Positions 7,052 to 62,900 of a stretch of 64,000 nucleotides of DNA are shown here, piece after piece. The translations under genes and the position numbers were made by a program. A model generated the notes under the pieces. That model searched no databases. It saw only the letters and a program-made list of their open reading frames with translations, and was not told the origin of the DNA. This DNA comes from Phyllobates terribilis. Lineage: Eukaryota. Within the stretch, counting starts at the first letter, position 1, and each line of letters begins with the position of its first letter. The DNA is taken from positions 890,382,001-890,446,000 of the forward strand of contig NW_027362761.1 in assembly GCF_046119375.1 (NCBI RefSeq), read 5' to 3'.

Positions 7052-9663
7052 TAAACCAGGGGTGGAGTCCTGAGGAGATAATTTGCATATTCCCACTGCA
7101 TTTTGGGGTAAGTGAAGAGTCTCCGCGAGCTCAAAGAACACTGGATTTTGGCTGTTGGAGCTGAAAAGAGGATATCGGTAAACCAGGGGTGGAGTCCTGA
7201 GGAGATAATTTGCATATTCCCACTGCATTTTGGGGTAAGTGAAGAGTCTCCGCGAGCTCAAAGAACACTGGATTTTGGCTGTTGGAGCTGAAAAGAGGAC
7301 ATCGGTAAACCAGGGGTGGAGTCCTGAGGAGATAATTTGCATATTCCCACTGCATTTTGGGGTAAGTGAAGAGTCTCCGCGAGCTCAAAGAACACTGGAT
7401 TTTGGCTGTTGGAGCTGAAAAGAGGACATCGGTAAACCAGGGGTGGAGTCCTGAGGAGATAATTTGCATATTCCCACTGCATTTTGGGGTAAGTGAAGAG
7501 TCTCCGCGAGCTCAAAGAACACTGGATTTTGGCTGTTGGAGCTGAAAAGAGGACATCGGTAAACCAGGGGTGGAGTCCTGAGGAGATAATTTGCATATTC
7601 CCACTGCATTTTGGGGTAAGTGAAGAGTCTCCGCGAGCTCAAAGAACACTGGATTTTGGCTGTTGGAGCTGAAAAGAGGACATCGGTAAACCAGGGGTGG
7701 AGTCCTGAGGAGATAATTTGCATATTCCCACTGCATTTTGGGGTAAGTGAAGAGTCTCCGCGAGCTCAAAGAACACTGGATTTTGGCTGTTGGAGCTGAA
7801 AAGAGGACATCGGTAAACCAGGGGTGGAGTCCTGAGGAGATAATTTGCATATTCCCACTGCATTTTGGGGTAAGTGAAGAGTCTCCGCGAGCTCAAAGAA
7901 CACTGGATTTTGGCTGTTGGAGCTGAAAAGAGGACATCGGTAAACCAGGGGTGGAGTCCTGAGGAGATAATTTGCATATTCCCACTGCATTTTGGGGTAA
8001 GTGAAGAGTCTCCGCGAGCTCAAAGAACACTGGATTTTGGCTGTTGGAGCTGAAAAGAGGACATCGGTAAACCAGGGGTGGAGTCCTGAGGAGATAATTT
8101 GCATATTCCCACTGCATTTTGGGGTAAGTGAAGAGTCTCCGCGAGCTCAAAGAACACTGGATTTTGGCTGTTGGAGCTGAAAAGAGGACATCGGTAAACC
8201 AGGGGTGGAGTCCTGAGGAGATAATTTGCATATTCCCACTGCATTTTGGGATAAGTGAAGAGTCTCCGCGAGCTCAAAGAACACTGGATTTTGGCTGTTG
8301 GAGCTGAAAAGAGGACATCGGTAAACCAGGGGTGGAGTCCTGAGGAGATAATTTGCATATTCCCACTGCATTTTGGGGTAAGTGAAGAGTCTCCGCGAGC
8401 TCAAAGAACACTGGATTTTGGCTGTTGGAGCTGAAAAGAGGACATCGGTAAACCAGGGGTGGAGTCCTGAGGAGATAATTTGCATATTCCCACTGCATTT
8501 TGGGGTAAGTGAAGAGTCTCCGCGAGCTCAAAGAACACTGGATTTTGGCTGTTGGAGCTGAAAAGAGGACATCGGTAAACCAGGGGTGGAGTCCTGAGGA
8601 GATAATTTGCATATTCCCACTGCATTTTGGGGTAAGTGAAGAGTCTCCGCGAGCTCAAAGAACACTGGATTTTGGCTGTTGGAGCTGAAAAGAGGACATC
8701 GGTAAACCAGGGGTGGAGTCCTGAGGAGATAATTTGCATATTCCCACTGCATTTTGGGGTAAGTGAAGAGTCTCCGCGAGCTCAAAGAACACTGGATTTT
8801 GGCTGTTGGAGCTGAAAAGAGGACATCGGTAAACCAGGGGTGGAGTCCTGAGGAGATAATTTGCATATTCCCACTGCATTTTGGGGTAAGTGAAGAGTCT
8901 CCGCGAGCTCAAAGAACACTGGATTTTGGCTGTTGGAGCTGAAAAGAGGACATCGGTAAACCAGGGGTGGAGTCCTGAGGAGATAATTTGCATATTCCCA
9001 CTGCATTTTGGGGTAAGTGAAGAGTCTCCGCGAGCTCAAAGAACACTGGATTTTGGCTGTTGGAGCTGAAAAGAGGACATCGGTAAACCAGGGGTGGAGT
9101 CCTGAGGAGATAATTTGCATATTCCCACTGCATTTTGGGGTAAGTGAAGAGTCTCCGCGAGCTCAAAGAACACTGGATTTTGGTTGTTGGAGCTGAAAAG
9201 AGGACATCGGTAAACCAGGGTTGGAGTCCTGAGGAGATAATTTGCATATTCCCACTGCATTTTGGGGTAAGTGAAGAGTCTCCGCGAGCTCAAAGAACAC
9301 TGGATTTTGGCTGTTGGAGCTGAAAAGAGGACATCGGTAAACCAGGGGTGGAGTCCTGAGGAGATAATTTGCATATTCCCACTGCATTTTGGGGTAAGTG
9401 AAGAGTCTCCGCGAGCTCAAAGAACACTGGATTTTGGCTGTTGGAGCTGAAAAGAGGACATCGGTAAACCAGGGGTGGAGTCCTGAGGAGATAATTTGCA
9501 TATTCCCACTGCATTTTGGGGTAAGTGAAGAGTCTCCGCGAGCTCAAAGAACACTGGATTTTGGCTGTTGGAGCTGAAAAGAGGACATCTGTAAACCAGG
9601 GGTGGAGTCCTGAGGAGATAATTTGCATATTCCCACTGCATTTTGGGGTAAGTGAAGAGTCTC
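7052..9663 (+). repeat. 127-bp monomer array, 20 complete units plus a 72-bp partial unit
   Basis: Exact 127-bp period; only five substitutions seen (~7172, 8251, 9184, ~9221, 9590). Confidence 0.98.
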
Positions 9664-9692
9664 ACTGTTTTTAGAACATTAACAATAAGAAC

Positions 9693-10655
9693 ATGGAAGA
9701 GTCCAGGAGCCATTTGGTGAGCTGCATATCCTGCTACATGTTCACAGACTTGCCAGTGGAAAAGCCAAACTTCACATCCCAGAAATGCAAGCTTGTGTCC
9801 CTGTTGGAGGAAAAGTTGCGAAATCTAGAAGAGAGGTTAACTACCTTGAAAATCATTAAGGAAGGTGAAGAGTTCTTAGACAGAGCAGAATTATCTCTTC
9901 ATGATTCAGAAAGAGAAGAAATTCGAACTGCACCTGACGAAACAGAGGAATGGAAGCATGTGACCCACAGAAGCAGGAGGATCGAGAGGCAGTCAGCACC
10001 CATACTGCTCAGGAACCAGTACCAGGCTCTCACGCAGGAGAACCATGAAGAAATACAGCAAAATAAGACTTTGCTAGCAATGAATAACCTTGTAAGCCCT
10101 CAGAATCCTCCTGGATGGAGAAAGAAGAATGTTGTGAAGAAAAAACGGAGAGTGGTGGTCATGGGGGATTCCCTGTTAAGAGGAACAGAGGCCGCTATCT
10201 GCAGACCAGACATAACCTCAAGAGAAATGTGCTGTCTTCCAGGAGCAAAAATTAAAGATGTGTCTAACAGGATATCAAGACTCTTCAGACCTACAGATCA
10301 CTACCCATTCCTGCTAATACATGTGGGGACAAATGACACCGCAAGAAAGGACCTGTAAACCATCTGCAGTGACTTTGAAGACTTAGGCAAGAAAGTGAAA
10401 GAATTGGGAGCGCAGGTGGTCTTCTCATCCATCCTCCCAGTGGATGGCCATGGAACAATGAGGTGGAATAAGATTCTACAGGTGAACAACTGGCTACGTC
10501 GATGGTGCCGTCAACAAGGATTTGGATTTCTGGATCACGGAATGAATTACCTATACGATGGACTACTTGCTAGAGATGGGGTGCACCTTACGAAGACTGG
10601 AAAACATGTATTTGGAAGTCGCCTTGCTACACTCATCAGAAGAGCTTTAAACTAG
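9693..10655 (+). pseudogene. CR1 ORF1 (N-terminal Cys motif, coiled coil, SGNH/GDSL esterase), ~320 aa with one in-frame TAA at 10356-10358
   Basis: SCISCYMF motif; VVVMGDSLLRG, LIHVGTND and DGVHL esterase blocks; the two track ORFs are in the same frame. Confidence 0.9.
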
Positions 10656-10777
10656 AACAATGTGGGAAGGGAAGCAAAAGGCCAGAAAAAGCCATACAGC
10701 TGACAAATACTATTGAGATCTCTGCTACTGGAAGTGGAAAGGAAGAACAAAGACAAAACAATTTAAATAATAAAAAT

Positions 10778-13572
10778 ATGGGAGGAAGAGAAACCAATCA
10801 CAAACTAAAATGTTTTTATACAAATGCACAAAGCATTGGCAACAAACAAGGAGAATTGGAACTACTAATGCAGGAAAAGGAATATGATGTCATTGGAGTC
10901 ACTGAAACTTGGTGGGACGATACACATGTTTGGAATAAAAGGCTAAAAGGATACAACTTATTTGCAAGAAACAGACTTGATAAACGAGGAGGAGGTGTTG
11001 CATTGTATGTTAGAAAAGCGTATATCTGCACAGAGATTGAATCTTCAGAGACTGGGAGTTCTGTGGAAACTGTTTGGGTAAGAATACAAGGAGAGAACAA
11101 CGGAAAGGACACCATTGTAGGCATTTACTACAGGCCACCTGGGCAAGCTGAAGATATGGATGAACTCTTTATGTATCAAATGACCAAGTTCTCCAAAAAA
11201 TATGACGTAGTGGTCATGGGAGATTTGAACTATCCAGACATTTGTTGGGAATCTCTCTCAAGTAAAACTAACAGGTCAAGCAAATTCTTATCGTCTCTTG
11301 CTGACAACTTTATCTTCCAAAAGGTAGGGGAGAAAACAAGGGGATCTGCTACTTTGGATCTAATCCTTATAAACAGGGAGGAAATGGTTGAGGAGGTAAA
11401 GGTGGCTGGGACCCTAGGAGGCAGCGATCATGCTATTATAGAATTTTGGATAACTAGAGGAGGAAGACATGTGAAGACTCAAACTTCAAGGTTAGATTTT
11501 AGAAAGGCAGATTTTAAGAGACTCAGAAAGAGAATAGGAGGGATCCAATGGCTGGATGTCCTTAAGGACAAAAATGTCCAGGAAGGATGGGAAATTTTTA
11601 AAAATGAGATTCTCAAAGCACAATCGCTAACAATCCTGAAAAGTAGGAAGAATGGGAAGCATTTAAGGAAACCAGGATGGATGAACACAGAACTTAAACA
11701 CATGCTAAAAAGAAAGAAAGAAATGTTTATTAAATGGAAAGAGGGAGGCATATCTAAAGAAGATTATAATGCAGTCTGCAGATCCTGCAGGGCACGTATC
11801 AGGTTAGCTAAAGCTGACAATGAATTAAGGCTTGCAAGAGATGTCAAAAGCAATAAAAAAGGATTTTGGGGGTATGTCAAAAGTAAAAGAAAAGAAAAGT
11901 CAAAGATGCTATAGGATTTTTACAGGATGAAAATGGAGAAATGGTAAGAGAGGATGTTGAGAAGGCCGAACTTTTTAATTCCTATTTTGCATCTGTTTTC
12001 TCTCAGAAAGAAAATGTAACATCAACTGATCTTCACTGTCCTTTTAAAGGAATAGAGGAATCCAAGTTATCTGTAAACAGAAAGATTGTGAGGGAATATT
12101 TAGCTAACATAAATGAGTTCAAGTCTCCAGGTCCAGATGAATTACACCCCAGAGTACTGAAGGAGATCGTAGAAGAAATTTTAGAACCACTCTCCATAAT
12201 CTTTGAAAATTCTTGGAGAACAGGAGAAGTCCCAGAAGACTGGAGAAGAGCAAATGTTCTTCCTATCTTCAAAAAGGGGAAGAAGGTGGACCCAGGGAAC
12301 TATAGGCCGGTGAGTCTGACTTCTATACCAGGAAAGATCTTTGAACAAATTATTAAACAACATGTATGTAAGTACATGGATAAGAATGAAGTGATTAACC
12401 AGAGTCAGCATGGGTTTGTAACTAACAAGTCATGTCAGACTAACTTAATTTCCTTCTATGACAGAATCACTGACTGGGTGGATCAGGGAAATGCTGTAGA
12501 TATAGTATATCTTGACTTCAGCAAAGCATTTGACAAAGTATCTCACACCATCCTTATTGAAAAAATGACCAAGTATGCAATGGACCAGGCAACTGTTAGG
12601 TGGATTCATAACTGGCTTAGTGATCGGACTCAAAGGGTGGTTGTAAATGGCTTCACATCCAGCTGGATGAATGTCTCAAGTGGGGTGCCACAGGGCTCCG
12701 TCCTGGGACCTGTATTGTTCAACATCTTTATCAATAATTTAGATGAAGGAATTGAGGGTAAACTGATTAAATTTGCTGATGACACAAAGCTAGGAGGGAT
12801 AGCTAATACTAGAGAAGAGAGAGAGAGGATTCCAAAAGACCTAAATAAACTGGAGCAGTGGGCAGCAACCAACAGAATGGTTTTTAACAGGGAAAAATGC
12901 AAAGTACTACATCTGGGCAATAAAAATGAAAAAAGCATATACAGAATGGGAGGAATAGAGCTAAGCAACAGTACATGTGAAAAAGACTTAGGTATACTAA
13001 TAGATCATAGACTGAACATGAGTCAACAGTGTGATGCAGCAGCAAAAAAGGCAAATACAATTCTGGGATGTATTAACAGAAGCATACAGTCTAGATCACG
13101 TGAAGTCATTATCGGTCTTTACTCCTCTTTGGTCAGACCTCATCTGGAATACTGTGTACAGTTTTGGGCACCACATTTTAAAAAAGACATAGACAAACTG
13201 GAGCAAGTTCAGAGAAGAGCGACCAGAATGGTGACTGGTCTGCAAACCATGTCCTATGAGGAACGGTTGCAGGATTTGGGAATGTTTAGCTTGCAAAAAA
13301 GAAGACTGAGAGGAGACTTAATAGCTGTCTACAAATATGTCAAGGGCTGTCACATTGTAGAAGGATCATCTTTATTCTCATTTGCACAAGGAAAGACTAG
13401 AAGCAATGGGATGAAACGAAATGGGAGGAGACACAGATTAGATATTAGAAAAAACTTTTTGACAGTTAGGGTGATTAATGAGTGGAATAGGCTGCCACGA
13501 GAGGTGGTGAGTTCCCCTTCAATGGACGTCTTCAAACAGAGGCTGGACAGACATCTGTCTGAGATGATCTAG
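10778..13572 (+). pseudogene. CR1 ORF2 (apurinic endonuclease plus reverse transcriptase) with one frameshift
   Basis: YTNAQS, GDLNYP and GGSDH APE motifs; GVPQGSVLGP and FADD RT motifs; a 5-bp AAAGA duplication at ~11886-11895 shifts the frame. Confidence 0.95.
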
Positions 13573-13656
13573 TGAATCCTGCTTTGAGCAGGGGGTTGGA
13601 CCAGATGACCCAGGAGGTCCCTTCCAACTCTACCATTCTATGATTCTATGATTCTA

Positions 13657-14425
13657 CAGTATTCACAAAATCTTACGAATAATGGTCTGATTGTCTTGTA
13701 AAATCAACAAGGACAAAACAGACCATATAGCACATGTGTCGTTTTACAAGATATAAAATCTTTAACGCACCATAAAACTGGACCTAACTGGAAGGAGGTG
13801 TCAGTCAGATGTTGAGGACAAAAAGAACATTGCCCACATTAAAAATTACCTAAAGGGATACTATTTTTAAACTAATTATCGTTCACTGATGCTATTTTGT
13901 TTTTAACCAGTAAATCTCTGAGATTTCTACTTCTTTTGTATGAAAAAAGGGTATTTGTCACTCAAGTCCTTGTCATTTTTAAGAAGATGCCAGTGTCTTC
14001 TTATTGCTGCATGGACCACATTGTCCATTTCTGTATGTTGAAAAGTGAGAGTAAATCTATCTAACCCCTCTTTGTTGAATGTTTTTTTGGGGACAATAAT
14101 TCTTTCTGTGTTTTTTGTTAACTTGTTCAATAGAGAACGGGGATATCCTCTCTCTAAAAAAGCATGTGTAAGTTCTGCCACCTGATTCTTAAATTTTGCT
14201 TCATTGTTAGTAATTCTCCTTACTCGCATCAGTTGGCTGTACGGGAGGCTTCTCCTAGTGTGGAATAGGTGGGCATTGTTGCAATGTAAAACTGAGTTAG
14301 TCGCTGTGGTTTTTTTTATGAATTTTAGTACATATCCTCCTGTCTATGATGTTGATCTTAACATCTCAAAACTCAAGCGAATCTCCTCCACAACTGGCTG
14401 TGAACTTCATGTTCTCTACAATTAA
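13657..14425 (-). mobile_element. Penelope-like element 1, upstream portion (RT C-terminus/thumb and N-terminal GIY-YIG), decayed and 5'-truncated
   Basis: Minus strand KTTATNSVLH...SLPYSQLMRVRR...FLERGYP...AIRRHWHLL and FISCKTTHVLYGLFCPC; several stops and deletions. Confidence 0.8.
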
Positions 14426-33255: not shown

Positions 33256-34383
33256 GCGCATATACTCGAGTATAAGCCTACCCGAGTATAAGCTGAGGTA
33301 CCTAATTTTACCCCCAAAAAATGGGAAAATTTATTGTCTCAAGTATAAGCCTAGGGTGGGAAATGCAGCCGCTATTGGTAAATTACCCCATTCTGGTATG
33401 CATTTCTCCCTCATCCCCAATCCTGGTATGCATGGGTCCCTCATCCCAAATCCTGGTATATATGGCCCCCTCATCCTAATCCTAGCATGCATGGCCTCCT
33501 CATCCCCAATCCTGGTTTGCATTGCCTCCTCATCCCAAATCCTGGTATGCATGGCCTCCTCATCCCCCAATCCTAGTATGCATGGCCTCCTCATCCCCCA
33601 ATCCTAGTATGCATGGCCTCCTCATCCCCCAATCCTAGTATGCATGGCCTCCTCATCCCCCAATCCTGGTATGTATGGAACCCCTCATCCATCAATCCTG
33701 GTATGCCTAGCCTCCTAATCCCCCAATTCTGGTATGTATGGCAACCCTCATCCCCCAATCCTGGCATGCATGGCCTCCTCATCCCCCAATCCTGGTATAG
33801 CCCCCTCATCCCCCAATCCTGGTATGTATGGCCCCATCACTGTACACATAAAAAAATAAACACTTATACTCGCCTTCCTTCCTTCCTCACCTCTACTCCA
33901 GCACTGCGCTGTGTTCTGCTGCAGCAGCTCATGTCAGCATCTGAGCAGCACATGGCGTCACGGCCATGCACTCTCAGACACTGATGTGTGCTGCCAGCAT
34001 ATTCACTCCTCTCCACGCTGGGACTATGTGCGTGGAGAGGAGCGAATATGCATTCTCTTTAGCAGCGGGCACTGTCAGCAGGAGCTGTGGCTCAGCGCTC
34101 CTCTGTGCCCACTACTAAAGAGAATGAATATTCATTCTTCTCCACGCCCATGGGAGTGGAGAAGAGGGAATATTCATTTCCCTTTATCAGTGGGCACACG
34201 TGGTAGCTGCAGCAGCCTGCTACTGAGTGTGCCCCGCTCCTCCGCCGCTGCAACACCCCCCCACCATTATCCACCACCGGGATTTCTATATACTCGAGTA
34301 TACACCTGAGTATAAGCCAAGTGGGGCTTTTTCAGCACAAAAAAATGTGCTGAAAAACTCGGCTTATACGCGAGTATATATGG
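33256..34383. mobile_element. Non-autonomous Tc2/pogo-like element carrying a ~30-bp minisatellite (~33395-33835)
   Basis: TA flanks; TIR ...ATATACTCGAGTATAAGCC / GGCTTATACGCGAGTATAT...; superfamily call from TIR and TSD pattern only. Confidence 0.7.
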
Positions 34384-39839: not shown

Positions 39840-41489
39840 CAGTCATATGAAAAAGTTTGGGCACCCCTATTAATCTTAAGCTTAATGTTTTATAAAAATT
39901 GGTGTTTTTGCAACAGCTATTTCAGTTTGATATATGTAATAACTGTTGGACACAGTAATGTTTCTGCCTTGAAATGAGGTTTATTGTACTAACAGAAAAT
40001 GTGCAATCTGCATTCAAACAAAATTTGAAAGGTGCATAAGTATGGGCACCCTTATCATTTTCTTGTTTTAAATACTCCTACCTACTTTTTACTGACTTAC
40101 TAAAGCACTTTTTTTGGTTTTGTAACCTCATGGAGCTTTGAACTTTATAGCCAGGTGTATGCAATCATGAGAAAAGCTACTTAAAGTGGCCACTTGCAAG
40201 TTGTTCTCCTGTTTGAATCTCCTCTGAAGAGTGGCATCATGTGCTCCTCAAAACAACTGTCAAATGATCTGAAAACAAAGATTATTCAACATAGTTGTTC
40301 AGGGGAAGCATACAAAAAGCTGTCTCAGAGATTTAACCTGTCAGTTTCCACTGTGAGGAACATAGTAAGGAAATGGAAGAACACAGGGACAGTTCTTGTT
40401 AAGGCCAGAAGTGGCAGGCCAAGAAAAACATCAGAAAGGCAGAGAAGAAGAATGGTGAGATCAGTCAAGGACAATCCTCAGACCACCTCCAGAGAGCTGC
40501 AGCATCAACTTGCTGCAGATGGTGTCACTGTGCATCGGTCAACTATACAAGGCACTTTGCACAAGGAGAAGCTGTATGGGAGAGTGATGCGAAAGAAGCT
40601 GTTTCTGCAAGCACGCCACAAACAGAGTTGGCTGAGGTATGCAAAAGCACATTTGGAGAAGCCAATTTCTTTTTGGAAGAAGGTCCTGTGGACTGATGAA
40701 ATCATGATTGAGTTATTTGATCATACAAAAAGGCGTTATGCATGGTGGCAAAAAAACACAGCATTCCAAGAAAAACACTTGCTACCCACAGTAAAATTTG
40801 GTGGAGGTTCCATCATGCTTTGGGGCTGTGTGGTCAATGCTGGCACTGGGAATCTTGTTAAAGTTGAGGGACGCATGGATTCCACTCAGTATCAGCAGTT
40901 TCTTGACAATAGTGTTCAAGAATCAGTGATAAATATGAAGTTACAAAGTGGATGGATCTTTCAGCAAGACAATGATCCAAAACACCGCTCCAAATCTACT
41001 CAGGCATTCATGCAGAGGAACAACTACAATGTTCTGGAATGGCCATCCCAGTCCCCAGACCTGAATATCATTGAACATCTGTGGGATCATTTGAAGAGGG
41101 CTGTCCATGCTCGACGACCATCAAACTTAACTGAACTGGAATTGTTTTGTAAAGAGGAATGGTCAAAAATACCTTCATCCAGGATCCAGGAACTCATTAA
41201 AAGCTACAGGAAGCGACTAGAGGCTGTTATTTTTGCAAAAGGAGGATCTACTAACTATTAATGTCACTTTTCTGGTGAGGTGCCCATACTTATGCACCTG
41301 TCAAATTTTGTTTGAATGCAGATTGCACATTTTCTGTTAGTACAATGAACCTCATTTCAAGGCAGAAACATTACTGTATCCAACAGTTATTACATATATC
41401 AAACTGAAATAGCTGTTGCAAAAACACCAATTTTTATAGAACATTAAGCTTAAGATTAATAGGGGTGCCCAAACTTTTTCATATGACTG
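39840..41489 (+). mobile_element. Complete Tc1 (DD34E) transposon
   Basis: TA TSD; ~200-bp TIRs CAGTCATATGAAAAAGTTTGGGCACCCC; uninterrupted ORF. Confidence 0.97.
40239..41261 (+). CDS. Tc1 transposase, 340 aa, intact DD34E triad
   Basis: Paired-like HTH N-terminus; WTDE, QQDND and SPDLNIIE with 34 residues between D and E. Confidence 0.92.
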   Translation: MCSSKQLSNDLKTKIIQHSCSGEAYKKLSQRFNLSVSTVRNIVRKWKNTGTVLVKARSGRPRKTSERQRRRMVRSVKDNPQTTSRELQHQLAADGVTVHRSTIQGTLHKEKLYGRVMRKKLFLQARHKQSWLRYAKAHLEKPISFWKKVLWTDEIMIELFDHTKRRYAWWQKNTAFQEKHLLPTVKFGGGSIMLWGCVVNAGTGNLVKVEGRMDSTQYQQFLDNSVQESVINMKLQSGWIFQQDNDPKHRSKSTQAFMQRNNYNVLEWPSQSPDLNIIEHLWDHLKRAVHARRPSNLTELELFCKEEWSKIPSSRIQELIKSYRKRLEAVIFAKGGSTNY

Positions 41490-47227: not shown

Positions 47228-48856
47228 CAGTACAGACCAAAAGTTTGGACACACCTTCTCATGTAAAGATTTTTCTGTATTTTCATGACTATGAAAATTG
47301 TACATTCACACTGAAGGCATCAAAACTATGAATTAACACGTGTGGAATTATATACTTAAAAAAAAGTGTGAAACAACTGAAAATATGTCTTATATTCTAG
47401 GTTCTTCAAAGTAGCCACCTTTTGCTTTGATGACTGCTTTGCATACTCTTTGCATTCTCTTGATGAGCTTCAAGAAGTAGTCTCCGGAAATGGTTTTCAC
47501 TTCACAGGTGTGCCCTGTCAGGTTTAATAAGTGGGATTTCTTGCCTTATAAATGGGGTTGGGACCATCAATTGTGTTGTGCAGAAGTCAGGTGGATACAC
47601 AGCTGATAGTCCTACTGAACAGACTGTTAGAATTTGTATTATGGCAAGAAAAAAGCAGCTAAGTAAAGAAAAACGAGTGGCCATCATTACTTTAAGAAAT
47701 GAAGGTCAGTCAGTCCAAAAAATTGGGCAAACTTTGAAAGTGTCCCCAAGTGCAGTTGCAAAAACCATCAAGCGCTACAAAGAAACTGGCTCACATGAGG
47801 ACCACCCCAGGAAAGGAAGACCAAGAGTCACCTATGCTTCTGAGGATAAGTTTATCCGAGTCACCAGCCTCAGAAATCGCAGGTTAACAGCAGCTCAGAT
47901 TAGAGACCAGGTCAATGCCAAACAGAGTTCTAGCAGCAGACACATCTCTTCAACAACTGTTAAGAGGAGACTTTGTGCAGCAGGCCTTCATGGTAAAATA
48001 GCTGCTAGGAAACCACTGCTAAGGACAGGCAACAAACAGAAGAGACTTATTTGGGATAAAGAACACAAGGAATGGACATTAGACGAGTGGAAATCTGTGC
48101 TTTGGGCTGATGAGTCCAAATTTGAGATCTTTGGTTCCAACCACCGTGTCTTTGTGCGACGCAGAAAAGGTGAACGGATGGACTCTACATGCCTGGTTCC
48201 CACCGTGAAGCATGGAGGAGGAGGTGTGATGGTGTGGGGGTGCTTTGCTGGTGACACTGTTGGGGATTTATTCAAAATTGAAGGCATACTGAACCAGCAT
48301 GGCTACCACAGCATCTTGCAGCGGCATGCTCTTCCATCCGGTTTGCGTTTAGTTGGACCATCATTTATTTTTCAACAGGACAATGACCCCAAACACACCT
48401 CCAGGCTGTGTAAGGGCTATTTTACCAAGAAGGAGAGTGATGGGGTGCTACGCCAGATGACCTGGCCTCCACAGTCACCAGACCTGAACCCAATCGAGAT
48501 GGTTTGGGGTGAGCTGGACCGCAGAGTGAAGGCAAAATGGCCAACAAGTGCTAAGCATCTCTGGGAACTCCTTCAAGATAGCTGGAAGACCATTTCCGGT
48601 GACTACCTCTTGGTGCTCATCAAGAGAATGCCAAGAGTGTGCAAAGCAGTCATCAAAGCAAAAGGTGGCTACCTTGTAGAACCTAGAATATAAGACATAT
48701 TTTCATTTGTTTCACACTTTTTTGTTAAGTATATAATTCCACCTGTGCTAATTCATAGTTTTGATGCCTTCAGTGTGAATGTACAATTTTCATAGTCATG
48801 AAAATACAGAAAAATCTTCAAATGAGAAGGTGTGTCCAAACTTTTGGTCTGTACTG
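47228..48856 (+). mobile_element. Complete DD38E (Intruder-type) Tc1/mariner transposon inserted in the (TA)n of the 5' pLTR
   Basis: TA TSD; long TIRs CAGTACAGACCAAAAGTTTGGACACACC; flanks rejoin to match 53085-53120. Confidence 0.93.
47641..48693 (+). CDS. Transposase, 350 aa, DD38E
   Basis: Open ORF; WADE, QQDND...SPDLNPIE with 38 residues between D and E; stop lies inside the right TIR. Confidence 0.9.
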   Translation: MARKKQLSKEKRVAIITLRNEGQSVQKIGQTLKVSPSAVAKTIKRYKETGSHEDHPRKGRPRVTYASEDKFIRVTSLRNRRLTAAQIRDQVNAKQSSSSRHISSTTVKRRLCAAGLHGKIAARKPLLRTGNKQKRLIWDKEHKEWTLDEWKSVLWADESKFEIFGSNHRVFVRRRKGERMDSTCLVPTVKHGGGGVMVWGCFAGDTVGDLFKIEGILNQHGYHSILQRHALPSGLRLVGPSFIFQQDNDPKHTSRLCKGYFTKKESDGVLRQMTWPPQSPDLNPIEMVWGELDRRVKAKWPTSAKHLWELLQDSWKTISGDYLLVLIKRMPRVCKAVIKAKGGYLVEPRI

Positions 48857-49977: not shown

Positions 49978-50736
49978 ATGACATCCATTACCTTCTCATA
50001 TAATGCGGATGAAGCCTCTACCATCCTTGCACAAGCCAGCATATCCAGTGATTTCTTGAGGGTCCCACCCAAAGAAACAAGGGGCCATGACCTAGAGATG
50101 GAACAGTGACACCTGATCAACATAGAGTTGCATTGCGCAACTCTAACCGAATACTTGAGGGTCCAACGGATCCCCAGGGGACTGAGGGCACCTATACGAC
50201 CTACTTTATTTTCCGACCTGCCAGAATACTGTAATAAGTTTGAGCAAATCCTAAATAAATGCTCATTTGATCTGATGACATTAACTGTTGACTTTTTGCA
50301 CAAGGCCATCATCTCTACGAAAGACCAGATCAAAAATATTGAATCACAACTCACATCATCCATTAGTCCAGAGGAGTGGCCTGCCCTTCAGAGTAAGATC
50401 AAGAGCAACATCGATCATCACAGAAAGGACACAGAATCCAGGAAAAGAAGCAAATTTCTAAGGGATATTGAGGACTACGAGCAGAATAGGGTTTATCGAT
50501 GGCAGAACAAATATTCTGTAGGGGGAAACCCACATCGATTTGCCAGATCATGTACCGAAATATCTTCCTCCGGCTCGGAGGCAGACAGGAGAGATCAATT
50601 TACCCCTTCTTCTCGTTTTTTAGGACAACAAAGGAGACGTCCATCAAGAAGAAGACGAGAAGAGGCGGGCAACATCAGAGGCAACACGGATTTCATCAGG
50701 GTGACCCGATCCCAGGCACAGCGCCCCTGGTGCTAA
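49978..50736 (+). pseudogene. PLE upstream ORF / N-terminal domain with one in-frame TGA at 50107
   Basis: EYLRVQRIPRGLR motif, helical middle, Arg/Ser-rich end; same frame either side of the stop. Confidence 0.7.
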
Positions 50737-52969
50737 ATATTTCCTCCAAAACCCTAAGCATTGCCCAACTGTCTGTATTGCAAAAAGGTCTCTCCTTCTG
50801 TCCAGTCAGTCGATTTAACACCTTTAATCTCGACATGGAACTTCAGCGGTTCTATCGCTCTTTAAGACTTAAGACACGCTTTGCCAAACCTGAGCTTACA
50901 GGCATTAGCAATTCCACCACTACTTCTAACCAAGATGCAGCTATTACATCCAACAGTCTAGGTCTTTATACCAAAAGCTCTTACAGGCCTCCCCTGGGCT
51001 CTCATGCCCTAGAAACCTTTATTGGTTTTGTAGACACGGCCTTTAAGGAATTATGGTCCAAGATTGATAGAGGTAAACTGCACTTTGAACCCAATCTTTC
51101 TCCCCTCGACCAACAAGGGCTCAATAGCCTGAAGGAGGATAAGAGTAATATTATAAAACCAGCAGACAGAGGGGGCGCAATTGTTATCATGGACAAAAGT
51201 CAATACATCAAAGAGGTGGAAAGTCAACTCAATGACACTACCACTTATCATCAGTTACCCCAGGACCCTACCTCCCAAATCAGTAGCTCGATATCTTCGG
51301 TCATCAACCGATTTGTTACAGCAGGCACTATTGACATTAAAACCGGCGAGTTTCTCACCAAGAAACACCCCATAACACCTGTCATTTACGTTTTGCCCAA
51401 AATCCACAAGAGCTTGATTGAACCTCCAGGACGACCAATAGTGGCCTCCACCGAGTCACTACTTTCCCCTCTATCTATTTTCTTGGAGAAAATACTTACA
51501 CCCCTAGTACAAAAAAGCCCATCCTTCCTACTAGACACAGGATCCTTTCTCACAACATTGACCAATCTAAAACAGGTCCCTCCAGGAGCCATTTTGGTCT
51601 CCTTCGATGTTAAGAATCTCTATACATCCATATCCCACGATCACGGCATTAACACAGCACATGCCCTTCTAACAGAATCACTCATTGACCCGCAAATTGT
51701 TGATCTTTCCATCGAATTAATTACCTTGGTACTCACCAAGAACTACTTCTTATTCCAGGACACTTATTATCTACAAGTTAAAGGCACTGCCATGGGCTCC
51801 AACGTGGCTCCCCCGTATGTAAATTGCTATATGGCCACATTTGAAAGCCAGGTAGTCTATTCCAAATCCTTGTTCCAAGAACATTCCATCGTTTGGAAAG
51901 GGTACATTGACGATATCTTTTGCATATGGGGAAGCCCGTTGGAGACTTTTGAAGCCTTCCATGTTTTCCTGAATTCCGCTTGGCCCGACCTGGGCTTCAC
52001 AATGACTCATGACTATCAGAAAGTGAGCTTTCTTGACACAATGGTGATGAAAGACGAGTATGGGTGTCTTACAACAGACCTCTATACTTACCCTACGGAC
52101 CGGAATGGTCTATTACACTTTACCAGCAATCACCCAAGGTCCATTAAGAAATCCATACCCAAATCCCAATTACAAACAGTTGAACGGATCGTGACCAACG
52201 AATCCATTCATAACCAGAGACTACAAGAAATGGGCTCTAAATTTAGCGAACGGGGATACTCGTCCTCTATATTACAACCACAGACAACGACAAACAAAAT
52301 CGCATTCCCTTTGTCCACACATTCCACCCCTACGCTTATATCCTACACAAAACCATTCGGAAACACTGGAACATATTACGGACAGGGTATCCAAATATTA
52401 CTTCCTTTCAACGGCCGTTCATGCCTTGCTTCAAGAGAGCCCCCAATCTTAGGGATTCTCTGGTATGTGCAGACATTGGCAAAACAAACCAGGGACCGAA
52501 ACAACGATTCCTTCAGAATCCTAAATTGGGAACTTTCCCTTGCCTGCAATGCCAGCAAAATAACAACGTTTTAAAGGGCAATATTGTTTATCATCCCCAC
52601 ACAGGCAAGAAATACAATATTAAAAACTACTTTACCTGCAGCAGTGCATTTGTCATATACCTCATTAAATGTTCATGTGGTCTAATCTACATAGGCAAAA
52701 CTACTCAGCCTGTCAATGATAGAATCTCCAAACACAAATCTACGATTCGGTGTAAGAATCTGCTACTACCTATTCCCCATCACTTCATTTCAGCAGGTCA
52801 TAACATATCCCAACTAAAATACCAGGTTTTGGAACTGGTACTGCCACCACGCCGGGGGGGCGACCGGGTCCGCCTCCTGAAACAGAGGGAGGCCTATTGG
52901 ATACATGAAATGGAATCCCTATCACCTAAGGGATGGAATAGGGAATATGATTTGCTTTCCTTTCTGTAG
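50499..52969 (+). pseudogene. PLE RT plus GIY-YIG endonuclease ORF with a frameshift near 52270
   Basis: LNISSK...QKGLSFCP, KPADRGG, YVLPKIHK, FDVKNLYTSI, GTAMGS, YIDD, FLD, RGY; then PCLQCQ linker and VIYLIKCSCGLIYIGKT. Confidence 0.92.
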
Positions 52970-59984: not shown

Positions 59985-62900
59985 TGGAAATGTAGCAGAA
60001 GGTACAAGAAAGCTGAGGAACTACCGAGAACCAGCTGACAGTACTGGAACCCGGATGGGTAGCAGAAGGTACAAGAGCCAATGGAACTGCCGAAGACCAG
60101 CTGACGGTACTGGAACTCGGTTACTAAGCAGGAGGTACCTGTGCCAGAAAGCACTACCAAGGACCAGCAGACGTTGGTGGAACTTGGATACCGAGAAGGA
60201 GGCACCTAATCGAACAAATTATTAAACAACATGTATGTAAGTACCTGGATAAGAATGAAGTGATTAACCAGAGTCAGCATGGGTTTATAACTAACAAGTC
60301 ATGTCAGACTAACTTAATTTCCTTCTATGACAGAATCACTGACTGGGTGGATCAGGGAAATGCTGTAGATATAGTATATCTTGACTTCAGCAAAGCATTT
60401 GACAAAGTATCTCACACCATCCTTATTGAAAAAATGACCAAGTATGCAATGGACCAGGCAACTGTTAGGTGGATTCATAACTGGCTTAGTGATCGGACTC
60501 AAAGGGTGATTGTAAATGGCTTCACATCCAGCTGGATGAATGTCTCAAGTGGGGTACCACAGGGCTCCGTCCTGGGACCTGTATTGTTCAACATCTTTAT
60601 CAATGATTTAGATGAAGGAATTGAGGGTAAACTGATTAAATTTGCTGATGACACAAAGCTAGGAGGGATAGCTAATACTAGAGAAGAGAGAGAGAGGATT
60701 CAAAAAGACCTAAATAAACTGGAGCAGTGGGCAGCAACCAACAGAATGGTTTTTAACAGGGAAAAATGCAAAGTACTACATCTGGGCAATAAAAATGAAA
60801 AAAGCATATACAGAATGGGAGGAATAGAGCTAAGCAACAGTACATGTGAAAAAGACTTAGGTATACTAATAGATCATAGACTGAACATGAGTCAACAGTG
60901 TGATGCAGCAGCAAAAAAGGCAAATACAATTCTGGGATGTATTAACAGAAGCATACAGTCTAGATCACGTGAAGTCATTATTGGTCTTTACTCCTCTTTG
61001 GTCAGACCTCATCTGGAATACTGTGTACAGTTTTGGGCACCACATTTTAAAAAAGACATAGACAAACTGGAGCAAGTTCAGAGAAGAGCGACCAGAATGG
61101 TGACTGGTCTGCAAACCATGTCCTATGAGGAACGGTTGCAGGATTTGGGAATGTTTAGCTTGCAAAAAAGAAGACTGAGAGGAGACTTAATAGCTGTCTA
61201 CAAATATGTCAAGGGCTGTCACATTGTAGAAGGATCATCTTTATTCTCATTTGCACAAGGAAAGACTAGAAGCAATGGGATGAAACTAAATGGGAGGAGA
61301 CACAGATTAGATATTAGAAAAAACTTTTTGACAGTTAGGGTGATTAATGAGTGGAACAGGCTGCCACGAGAGGTGGTGAGTTCCCCTTCAATGGACGTCT
61401 TCAAACAGAGGCTGGACAGACATCTGTCTGAGATGATTTAGTGAATCCTGCTTTGAGCAGGGGGTTGGACCAGATGACCCAGGAGGTCCCTTCCAACTCT
61501 ACCATTCTATGATTCTATGATTCTAATCCAAAGGCACTGCCGAGAACCAGCTGACGGTACTGGAACCCGGATGGGTAGCAGAAGGTACCCATGTAAAAAA
61601 AAGTTCAAGGCCGCGAGCCGCCCACAGTTACCAAAACCCACAGTCCTACAGGGGGTGCTTGTCCTATTGGCACTATGGAACCAGCCTTCATTGCCTGATC
61701 CCGCAGCCCACATAGGAGTCACCTAAACTGCAGGCACCATAGAGTCGGCTAACCCGACCGCAACACGACAGGACAACGCATTGGAGGCAAAGTGACGTTG
61801 ACACTACCCGGAAACAGCTGGCGTGCTGGAACCAGACTGGGCAGGAGGGAGTACCCGTGCCAAAGTCAATGCCGAGAACCAGCTGACGGTACTGGAACCC
61901 GGATGGGTAGTAGAAGGTACAAGAGCAAATGGAACTACCGAGGACCAGCTGACGGTACTGGAACCCGGATGGGTAGCAGAAGGTACAAGAGCCAATGGAA
62001 CTGCCGAAGACCAGCTGACGGTACTGGAACTCGGTTACTAAGCAGGAGGTACCTGTGCCAGAAAGCACTACCAAGGACCAGCAGACGTTGGTGGAACTTG
62101 GATACCGAGAAGGAGGCACCTAATCCAAAGGCACTGCCGAGAACCAGCTGACGGTACTGGAACCCGGATGGGTAGCAGAAGGTACCCATGTAAAAAAAAG
62201 TTCAAGGCCGCGAGCCGCCCACAGTTACCAAAACCCACAGTCCTACAGGGGGTGCTTGTCCTATTGGCACTATGGAACCAGCCTTCATTGCCTGATCCCG
62301 CAGCCCACATAGGAGTCACCTAAACTGCAGGCACCATAGAGTCGGCTAACCCGACCGCAACACGACAGGACAACGCATTGGAGGCAAAGTGACGTTGACA
62401 CTACCCGGAAACAGCTGGCGTGCTGGAACCAGACTGGGCAGGAGGGAGTACCGGTGCCAAAGTCAATGCCGAGAACCAGCTGACGGTACTGGAACCCGGA
62501 TGGGTAGTAGAAGGTACAAGAGCAAATGGAACTACCGAGGACCAGCTGACGGTACTGGAACCCGGATGGGTAGCAGAAGGTACAAGAGCCAATGGAACTG
62601 CCGAAGACCAGCTGACGGTACTGGAACTCGGTTACTAAGCAGGAGGTACCTGCCAGAAAGCACTACCAAGGACCAGCAGACGTTGGTGGAACTTGGATAC
62701 CGAGAAGGAGGCACCTAATCCAAAGGCACTGCCGAGAACCAGCTGACGGTACTGGAACCCGGATGGGTAGCAGAAGGTACCCATGTAAAAAAAAGTTCAA
62801 GGCCGCGAGCCGGCCGCAGTTACCAAAACCCACAGTCCTACAGGGGGTGCTTGTCCTATTGGCACTATGGAACCAGCCTTCATTGCCAGATCCCGCAGCC

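Follow-up and report, generated by a model that had tools for sequence, protein, structure and literature searches.

To our knowledge, the promoters of LINEs (long interspersed nuclear elements) are almost unknown outside mammals, and the 5′ untranslated regions (UTRs) of LINEs usually cannot be aligned even between families. The L1 promoters of mouse and rat consist of tandem 5′ units, or monomers (A, Tf, Gf), which vary in number, contain factor sites in each unit and are joined by a short tether to open reading frame 1 (ORF1), a modular design that preserves the promoter through retrotransposition (PMC7778262, PMC5381506). The distal sequence element (DSE) of small nuclear RNA (snRNA)-type genes (U1-U6, 7SK, H1, tRNA-Sec) contains a perfect octamer and then a Staf/ZNF143-type site, or SPH element, which in the chicken 7SK and U4B genes is found 4 bp downstream of the octamer (PMC2235858). 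In human RPPH1 (H1), with a promoter contained within 100 bp, the octamer ATTTGCAT at -97 to -90 is separated by 3 nt from a reverse Z-motif at -86 to -70. Here we analyze a window of 64,000 nt from the frog Phyllobates terribilis (assembly GCF_046119375.1, contig NW_027362761.1, positions 890,382,001 to 890,446,000, forward strand) that contains a LINE of the CR1 clade starting with a tandem array of 127-bp monomers. We estimate at roughly 60 % the probability that these units are the element's own modular promoter for RNA polymerase II (pol II), built like the monomers of mouse L1.

The array shares with the rodent L1 promoters the tandem arrangement at the 5′ end, the short tether, the variable number of units and the presence of putative factor sites in each of them. 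It differs in the clade of its host element, in unit length (125–128 bp, versus ca. 200 bp in mouse and 650 bp in rat), in the number of units, which at 20.6 in the window is far above the mouse mean of ca. 3, and in a core made up of an octamer and an SPH/Staf site, with the YY1 core absent by motif search. Additionally, the CR1 monomers of the snake and the frogs are homologous; L1 5′ UTRs, in contrast, are unalignable even between families. The octamer and the Staf-type site show the spacing and orientation of the chicken DSEs; however, the CR1 module is located in a LINE leader, in up to 21 copies, and lies ca. 76–104 nt from the inferred transcription start and not ca. 220 (200–250) nt from it, with the compact H1 promoter as a fitting exception. 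It also differs from snRNA-type genes in that the Staf site is weak in the window's family, a proximal sequence element (PSE) is not established and no snRNA gene was found by Rfam. The human L1 5′ UTR is likewise a TATA-less internal promoter within the transcript, in which ubiquitous factors have sites near the start, although it is a single, unrepeated region of 900 bp with YY1, RUNX and SOX sites and no sequence relation to the CR1 units. Lastly, Pr77 of trypanosomatid non-LTR retrotransposons is a short 5′ promoter of LINE type that is reported to bind TBP and SNAP50, a subunit of SNAPc (PMC8190864); it is, however, a protozoan, single 77-nt unit of unrelated sequence, and any role of SNAPc in CR1 is hypothetical.

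Architecture and motifs of the monomer array

The CR1 LINE spans positions 7052-13657 of the window, from which a LINE RNA of 6.6 kb is expected, and its 5′ end is formed by the array (7052-9663, plus strand). This contains 20 complete units followed by a partial one of 72 bp, arranged head-to-tail with a period of 127 bp and with five substitutions in 2612 bp. The presence of 21 units at the exact 5′ end of a LINE whose copies start in phase (see below) fits a promoter. The conserved core of each unit would be composed of the octamer, a POU-factor site, and a reverse SPH/Staf (ZNF143-type) site 4 nt away, plus two further kept blocks, TC(T/A)CCGCGAG and AAAGAACAC.GG.TTT. Each unit would serve as the upstream promoter for a start in the next one; a transcript begun in unit k+1 would thus keep complete promoter units, allowing the LINE to propagate. 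As judged from the sequence, the pairing and geometry of the octamer and the SPH/Staf site are those of the DSE, but their position differs from that of classical distal elements. This would represent a CR1 promoter built from monomers, as known from rodent L1, with a core of snRNA-enhancer type, and a second, independent case of the monomer solution; it also provides a concrete model of CR1 transcription, including the acting factors, the position of the start and the reason for the multiplication of the unit.

In the first unit, the perfect octamer ATTTGCAT occupies positions 7081-7088 (plus strand), and all 21 units contain a perfect match to the octamer of the snRNA-type DSE, ATGCAAAT. Four nucleotides after it there is a Staf/ZNF143 (SPH)-like 17-mer on the minus strand (7093-7109), including the 15-nt string CACTGCATTTTGGGG (7094-7108; CCCCAAAATGCAGTG on the minus strand). 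Upstream of the octamer there are a GT box, GGGGTGGAG (7059-7067, plus strand), and a GATA-like motif, AGATAA (7076-7081, plus strand), which overlaps the octamer by one base. The octamer and AGATAA occur 21 times in the array, and the GT box and the Staf-like string 20 times each; the unit at 8195 has GGGA and that at 9211 has a broken GT box. The original prediction, which described each monomer as an snRNA distal enhancer with these four sites, was therefore accurate as to their positions, each being present in 20 or 21 of the 21 units. Nevertheless, the array is young and its units are near-identical, so that the 21-fold repetition amounts to one observation and brings no independent support.

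Not all of these motifs stand out from chance, as estimated with shuffled 127-mers and with the remaining 57.3 kb of the window as background. A perfect octamer appears in a shuffled 127-mer with P = 0.004 (five copies in the background), and the degenerate 11-nt core proposed for the Staf site, CCCRNMATSCM, is equally rare (P = 0.004). Within 40 nt of the five background octamers, no Z-motif exceeds 3.2 bits. In contrast, CACCC, for the GT box, and WGATAR, for GATA, are found at P = 0.25 and P = 0.24, respectively. The GT box and the GATA motif, which the original prediction had counted as meaningful sites, are at chance level and lost in the relatives (see below), and are thus best regarded as incidental.

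The Staf-like 17-mer was scored with a Z-motif weight matrix hand-tallied from published tables, using 29 distinct ZNF143-occupied, non-U1-type human sites (Fig S10 of PMC3499247) and leaving out one 16-mer, the U1-type variants and those sites not marked with an asterisk. Its score is 8.2 bits in 20 units, rising to 11.5 bits in the unit at 8195. The core fits the matrix, with CCCR and C at position 12, both of which are named as highly conserved in the Z-motif (PMC3082894), whereas positions 1, 2, 7 and 14 carry letters found once among the 29 real sites. A plus-strand Staf reading (TTCCCAC...) scored 4.0 bits and was rejected. A motif search of the array for a Sox-Oct composite, a TATA box or the YY1 core found none.

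Related CR1 units and the phase of their 5′ ends

We retrieved DNA around homologs of ORF1 and found comparable 5′ units in three related elements: L001, from Dendrobates tinctorius, which belongs to a CR1 subfamily distinct from that of the window (2.3 units of 128 bp; N-terminal piece of ORF1 87 % identical); L002, from Ranitomeya imitator (one unit; N-terminal piece of ORF1 54 % identical); and L009, from the snake Erythrolamprus reginae (3.0 units of 125 bp, at L009:3522-3900). The number of units thus differs between copies (window, 20.6; L001, 2.3; snake, 3.0). The octamer is unchanged in the three of them and is followed in all four elements, after a gap of 4 nt, by a Staf-type site in reverse orientation. 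This site is homologous to that of the window and scores 14.3 bits in L001 (P = 0.007), 16.3 bits in L002 (P = 0.0006) and 17.8 bits in the snake, suggesting, by parsimony, that a strong Staf-type site is ancestral and that the version of the window subfamily has drifted to a weak match. Conversely, the position of the GT box is occupied by GGGGAAGAG in L001 and the box is lost in L002 and in the snake, while at that of the GATA motif L001 has AGATCA and the snake GGGTAA, the motif being lost in L002. The comparison to an snRNA distal enhancer thus holds in this CR1 lineage for the pairing of octamer and SPH, its 4-nt spacing and its orientation, but not for the distance to the start. The degenerate Staf core is rare by chance and the full Staf-type site is strong in the relatives, while the window carries the weakest version of the 17-mer. 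Since the octamer and the Staf-type site are both kept in three related 5′ units, a lack of conservation cannot be held against them, as it can against the GT box and GATA.

The core of the snake monomer is 76–78 % identical to that of the frogs over 79–83 columns (z = 15–16 versus shuffles), above the 65 % identity of the DNA for the reverse transcriptase (RT) domain. At the protein level, the snake and window elements are 38 % identical in the N-terminal part of ORF1, 48 % in the AP endonuclease (APE) and 58 % in the RT. The snake monomer retains the octamer, the 4-nt gap with the reverse Staf-type site, the TC(A/T)CCGCGAG block and the AAAGAACAC.GG.TTT block, and is devoid of the GT box, the GATA motif and a GTAAGT string present in the window units. 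The leader unit of CR1 is therefore better kept between snake and frogs than RT DNA, and its conserved letters are those of the octamer/SPH enhancer of snRNA-type genes. The high similarity of the core could stem from strong constraint, from swapping of 5′ ends among CR1 lineages or from transfer between hosts; Erythrolamprus is a genus of snakes that prey on frogs.

The units also have a common phase at the 5′ end of the copies. Each monomer starts with CCAGG (7056-7060, plus strand, in the first unit, next at 7183 and so on every 127 bp), which we take as the putative transcription start region. It is part of the block AAACCAGGG, invariant in the three frog units (window, L001 and L002), with the CCAGG core also present in the snake. 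The window copy begins at TAAACCAGGGG, as does a copy assembled in contigs from X1, a public run whose contigs represent other copies of the window's CR1 family; L001 begins at CAGGGG and the snake element at the homologous CAGGAA. Four independent 5′ ends, a small sample, are hence within 6 nt of a single monomer phase. These data suggest that transcription most likely starts at CCA(+1)GG, heading the next unit, with the octamer/SPH pair ca. 76–104 nt upstream of it. If this start, inferred from sequence, is numbered +1 at the A of CCAGG in the next unit, the octamer lies at -104 to -97 in the window and at -102 to -95 in the snake, and the Staf-type site at -92 to -76 and -90 to -74, respectively.

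Several observations weigh against a modular promoter with this core. The Staf-like 17-mer of the window reaches only 8.2 bits, with P = 0.15 versus dinucleotide shuffles, which corresponds to the 2.5th percentile of simulated true sites and to one equal match in every 1.4 kb of background; moreover, no other part of the monomer differs as much between the window and L001 subfamilies (ca. 6 of 17–18 positions, versus ca. 13 % overall). The weight matrices for the Z-motif and the PSE derive from human sites and are scored here on frog and snake DNA. Only four related 5′ regions were retrieved, and the CR1 5′ UTRs from a turtle (L005), a lizard (L006) and three short contigs (L007, L008 and L011) could not be aligned and contained no octamer and no such unit. 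Finally, two truncated copies from R. imitator begin ca. 40–45 nt downstream of the module, and not at CCAGG. The latter starts fit a module that, in an element with a single unit, fires downstream of itself.

The truncated copies in R. imitator are L003, L004 and L010. Two of them, which are independent, are cut at nearly one point, AGCTTGGCTGAG (L003:5925-5940 and L004:16395-16455; compare L002:5931-5937), and L004 bears a duplication of ca. 30 nt of its own first bases. An additional start site, or template jumping at the 5′ end, may explain this shared truncation point. Pattern scans of metagenomes for the octamer/SPH block returned no matches.

Alternative functions of the units

The TC(T/A)CCGCGAG block raises the question of whether the monomers contain a complete core promoter of snRNA type. 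In the window, it is part of a conserved, PSE-like sequence (TCTCCGCGAG..., 7120-7138, plus strand, 20 copies) that starts 65 nt upstream of the next CCA(+1)GG; the equivalent distance is 61 nt in the snake and 66 nt in L001. Human PSEs start at -59 to -62 in pol II genes and at -64 to -68 in pol III genes. In this CR1 lineage, which dendrobatid frogs and a colubrid snake have in common, each monomer could be a compact, TATA-less, SNAPc-dependent pol II promoter, with octamer, Staf site and PSE in ca. 125 bp, multiplied along the array; such a promoter, akin to a human H1 promoter without a TATA box, would transcribe a LINE into RNA devoid of a poly(A) tail. The block agrees with the U6/7SK PSE consensus (PMC7949045) at 14 of 17 positions for the snake (P = 0.012) and 13 of 17 for the window (P = 0.09), including the CCG that is contacted by SNAP190 (PMC9652321). 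Also, the window monomers have no TATA box by motif search, as occurs in pol II snRNA-type promoters, an H1 core of ca. 100 bp without a TATA box drives a pol II reporter (PMC7949045), and SNAP50 is reported to bind the trypanosomatid LINE promoter (PMC8190864).

Other data do not agree with a PSE. With a matrix of 43 human PSEs, hand-tallied after thinning the U1 family to three rows and dropping six unlikely rows, the block scores 9.1 bits in the snake (P = 0.04), 5.7 bits in the window (P = 0.22) and still lower in L001, and every CR1 unit has C in place of the near-invariant T at position 7 of the PSE. The R. imitator unit lacks the block. An Rfam search of the window and of L001-L004 revealed no snRNA gene, and the scoring was thus done on human and not on frog models. 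A search for the snRNA 3′ box found none, and the product would be a LINE RNA of 6.6 kb and not a short non-coding one. In the literature, we found no vertebrate LINE with a promoter of the type of snRNA genes. The position of the block near the putative start is therefore suggestive of a SNAPc-type PSE, but we consider it unlikely that the monomers are complete promoters of this class. If they were, the type of promoter could be tied to the lack of a poly(A) tail in the CR1 RNA, and a genuine PSE would connect the SNAPc transcription system with a LINE.

The original prediction went further in proposing that the array may be a super-enhancer of the germline or early embryo, bound by class V POU proteins (Pou5f3) and capable of influencing the host locus. 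Frog oocytes and embryos are rich in POU factors, and there are 21 octamers in 2.6 kb. However, a lone octamer cannot separate POU classes, and the absence of a Sox-Oct composite in the array deprives the pointer to Pou5f3 of support. Moreover, the units are placed right where a LINE has its 5′ end, and its copies start in phase, which fits a promoter; their neighborhood contains transposon ORFs, with no evident host gene in the window. A main role as a super-enhancer thus appears very improbable.

We also considered that the conserved core might act as RNA within the 5′ UTR, in translation, packaging or binding of the ORF1 protein, and not as DNA bound by proteins. The core would indeed be transcribed if starts coincide with monomer heads, and an inverted repeat, GGAGA...TCTCC, flanks the octamer/SPH module in the predicted folds of the frog units (7069-7127 in the window, and in each unit). 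This repeat is not kept in the snake, though, and the units show no unusual RNA fold, with predicted structures that are no stabler than shuffles (z = -0.2, -1.2 and +0.8) and that differ between frog and snake. Because the conserved letters are two known factor sites at canonical spacing, there is little reason to favor a function at the RNA level. Lastly, it is hardly credible that the motif cluster is a coincidence without sequence-specific function, multiplied by recent tandem amplification, for even if GATA and the GT box do not exceed chance, the window has P = 0.15 for its Staf-like site and 21 near-identical copies count once, the octamer and its adjacent Staf-type site are kept in frogs and snake, in a core better conserved than RT-domain DNA.

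The GTAAGT string (monomer positions 57–62, in 20 units) was evaluated as a splice donor and rejected, since it is not conserved: its counterparts are ATAAGT in L001, AAAAGC in L002 and AGAAGC in the snake. An acceptor-like site, TTTTTAG, ends 18 nt before the ORF1 ATG (window 9648-9674).

The host element, its lineage and its surroundings

The truncated last monomer is separated from the ATG of ORF1 by a tether of 29 nt (9664-9692, plus strand). ORF1 (9693-10655, plus strand) is of the GDSL/SGNH esterase type and is broken by a premature stop at 10356-10358; it showed a weak match to Lipase_GDSL_2 in a Pfam search. The best protein match of its first 221 residues, with 87 % identity, is the D. 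tinctorius ORF1 P0001, which carries PF13472, whereas an exact-protein look-up with the ORF1 piece of the window copy returned no records. ORF2 (10778-13572, plus strand) codes for an APE and an RT, with Pfam matches to Exo_endo_phos (7.6e-17) and RVT_1 (3.6e-35), and contains a frameshift near 11885-11940. The 3′ UTR (13573-13657, plus strand) ends in ATTCTATG repeats, of the ATTCTRTG octamer type, which mark the 3′ end of the element at 13657 without a poly(A) tail; a motif search of this UTR found neither AATAAA nor the snRNA 3′ box. The esterase-type ORF1, akin to CR1 ORF1 proteins annotated in reptiles, birds and frogs, the APE and RT in ORF2, and the tail of ATTCTATG repeats identify the element as a CR1 and not as a member of the L1 clade.

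The window copy and the X1 contigs of other copies differ in 12 of 4164 nt, and both lesions that break the ORFs are private to the window copy, because the X1 contigs have G at 10356, with no stop, and lack 5 nt at 11885. The window copy is thus young but dead, and the consensus of its family looks intact, such that the family may still be active. Read depth in X1 climbs towards the 3′ end of the element, the run behaving like DNA. A search of public runs listed no RNA run carrying the element, and three raw RNA runs gave no reads against 9537-13700, although these come from another organism and hence constitute no test of transcription.

Comparison of ORF1 products (P0005, P0002 and P0004) showed that the D. 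tinctorius protein is 69 % identical to that of the tegu Salvator merianae, 67 % to that of a metagenome contig and 64 % to that of Ranitomeya. Since the tegu and metagenome products are closer to D. tinctorius than the product from Ranitomeya, the CR1 lineages depart from the phylogeny of their hosts. A "SGNH/GDSL hydrolase" of Klebsiella pneumoniae (P0076), from a contig of 2.9 kb, shares 65 % identity with the frog CR1 ORF1 along 55 % of its length, and probably reflects contamination of a bacterial assembly by vertebrate DNA.

The window around the LINE is rich in transposons, without any evident host gene. It contains transposon ORFs at 40194-41261, 47578-48693, 50499-52574 and 60260-61441, comprising two Tc1/mariner transposases and two further reverse transcriptases. 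Just upstream of the CR1 copy in L001 there are two near-perfect tandem arrays, of 36 bp x 19.8 (L001:3000-3710) and 33 bp x 10.1 (L001:5064-5396). The window itself contains a 31-bp tandem repeat (GGATGAGGGG...CCAGGATTGG) at 33-1587, the reverse complement of which is found 32 kb away, at 33386-33833.

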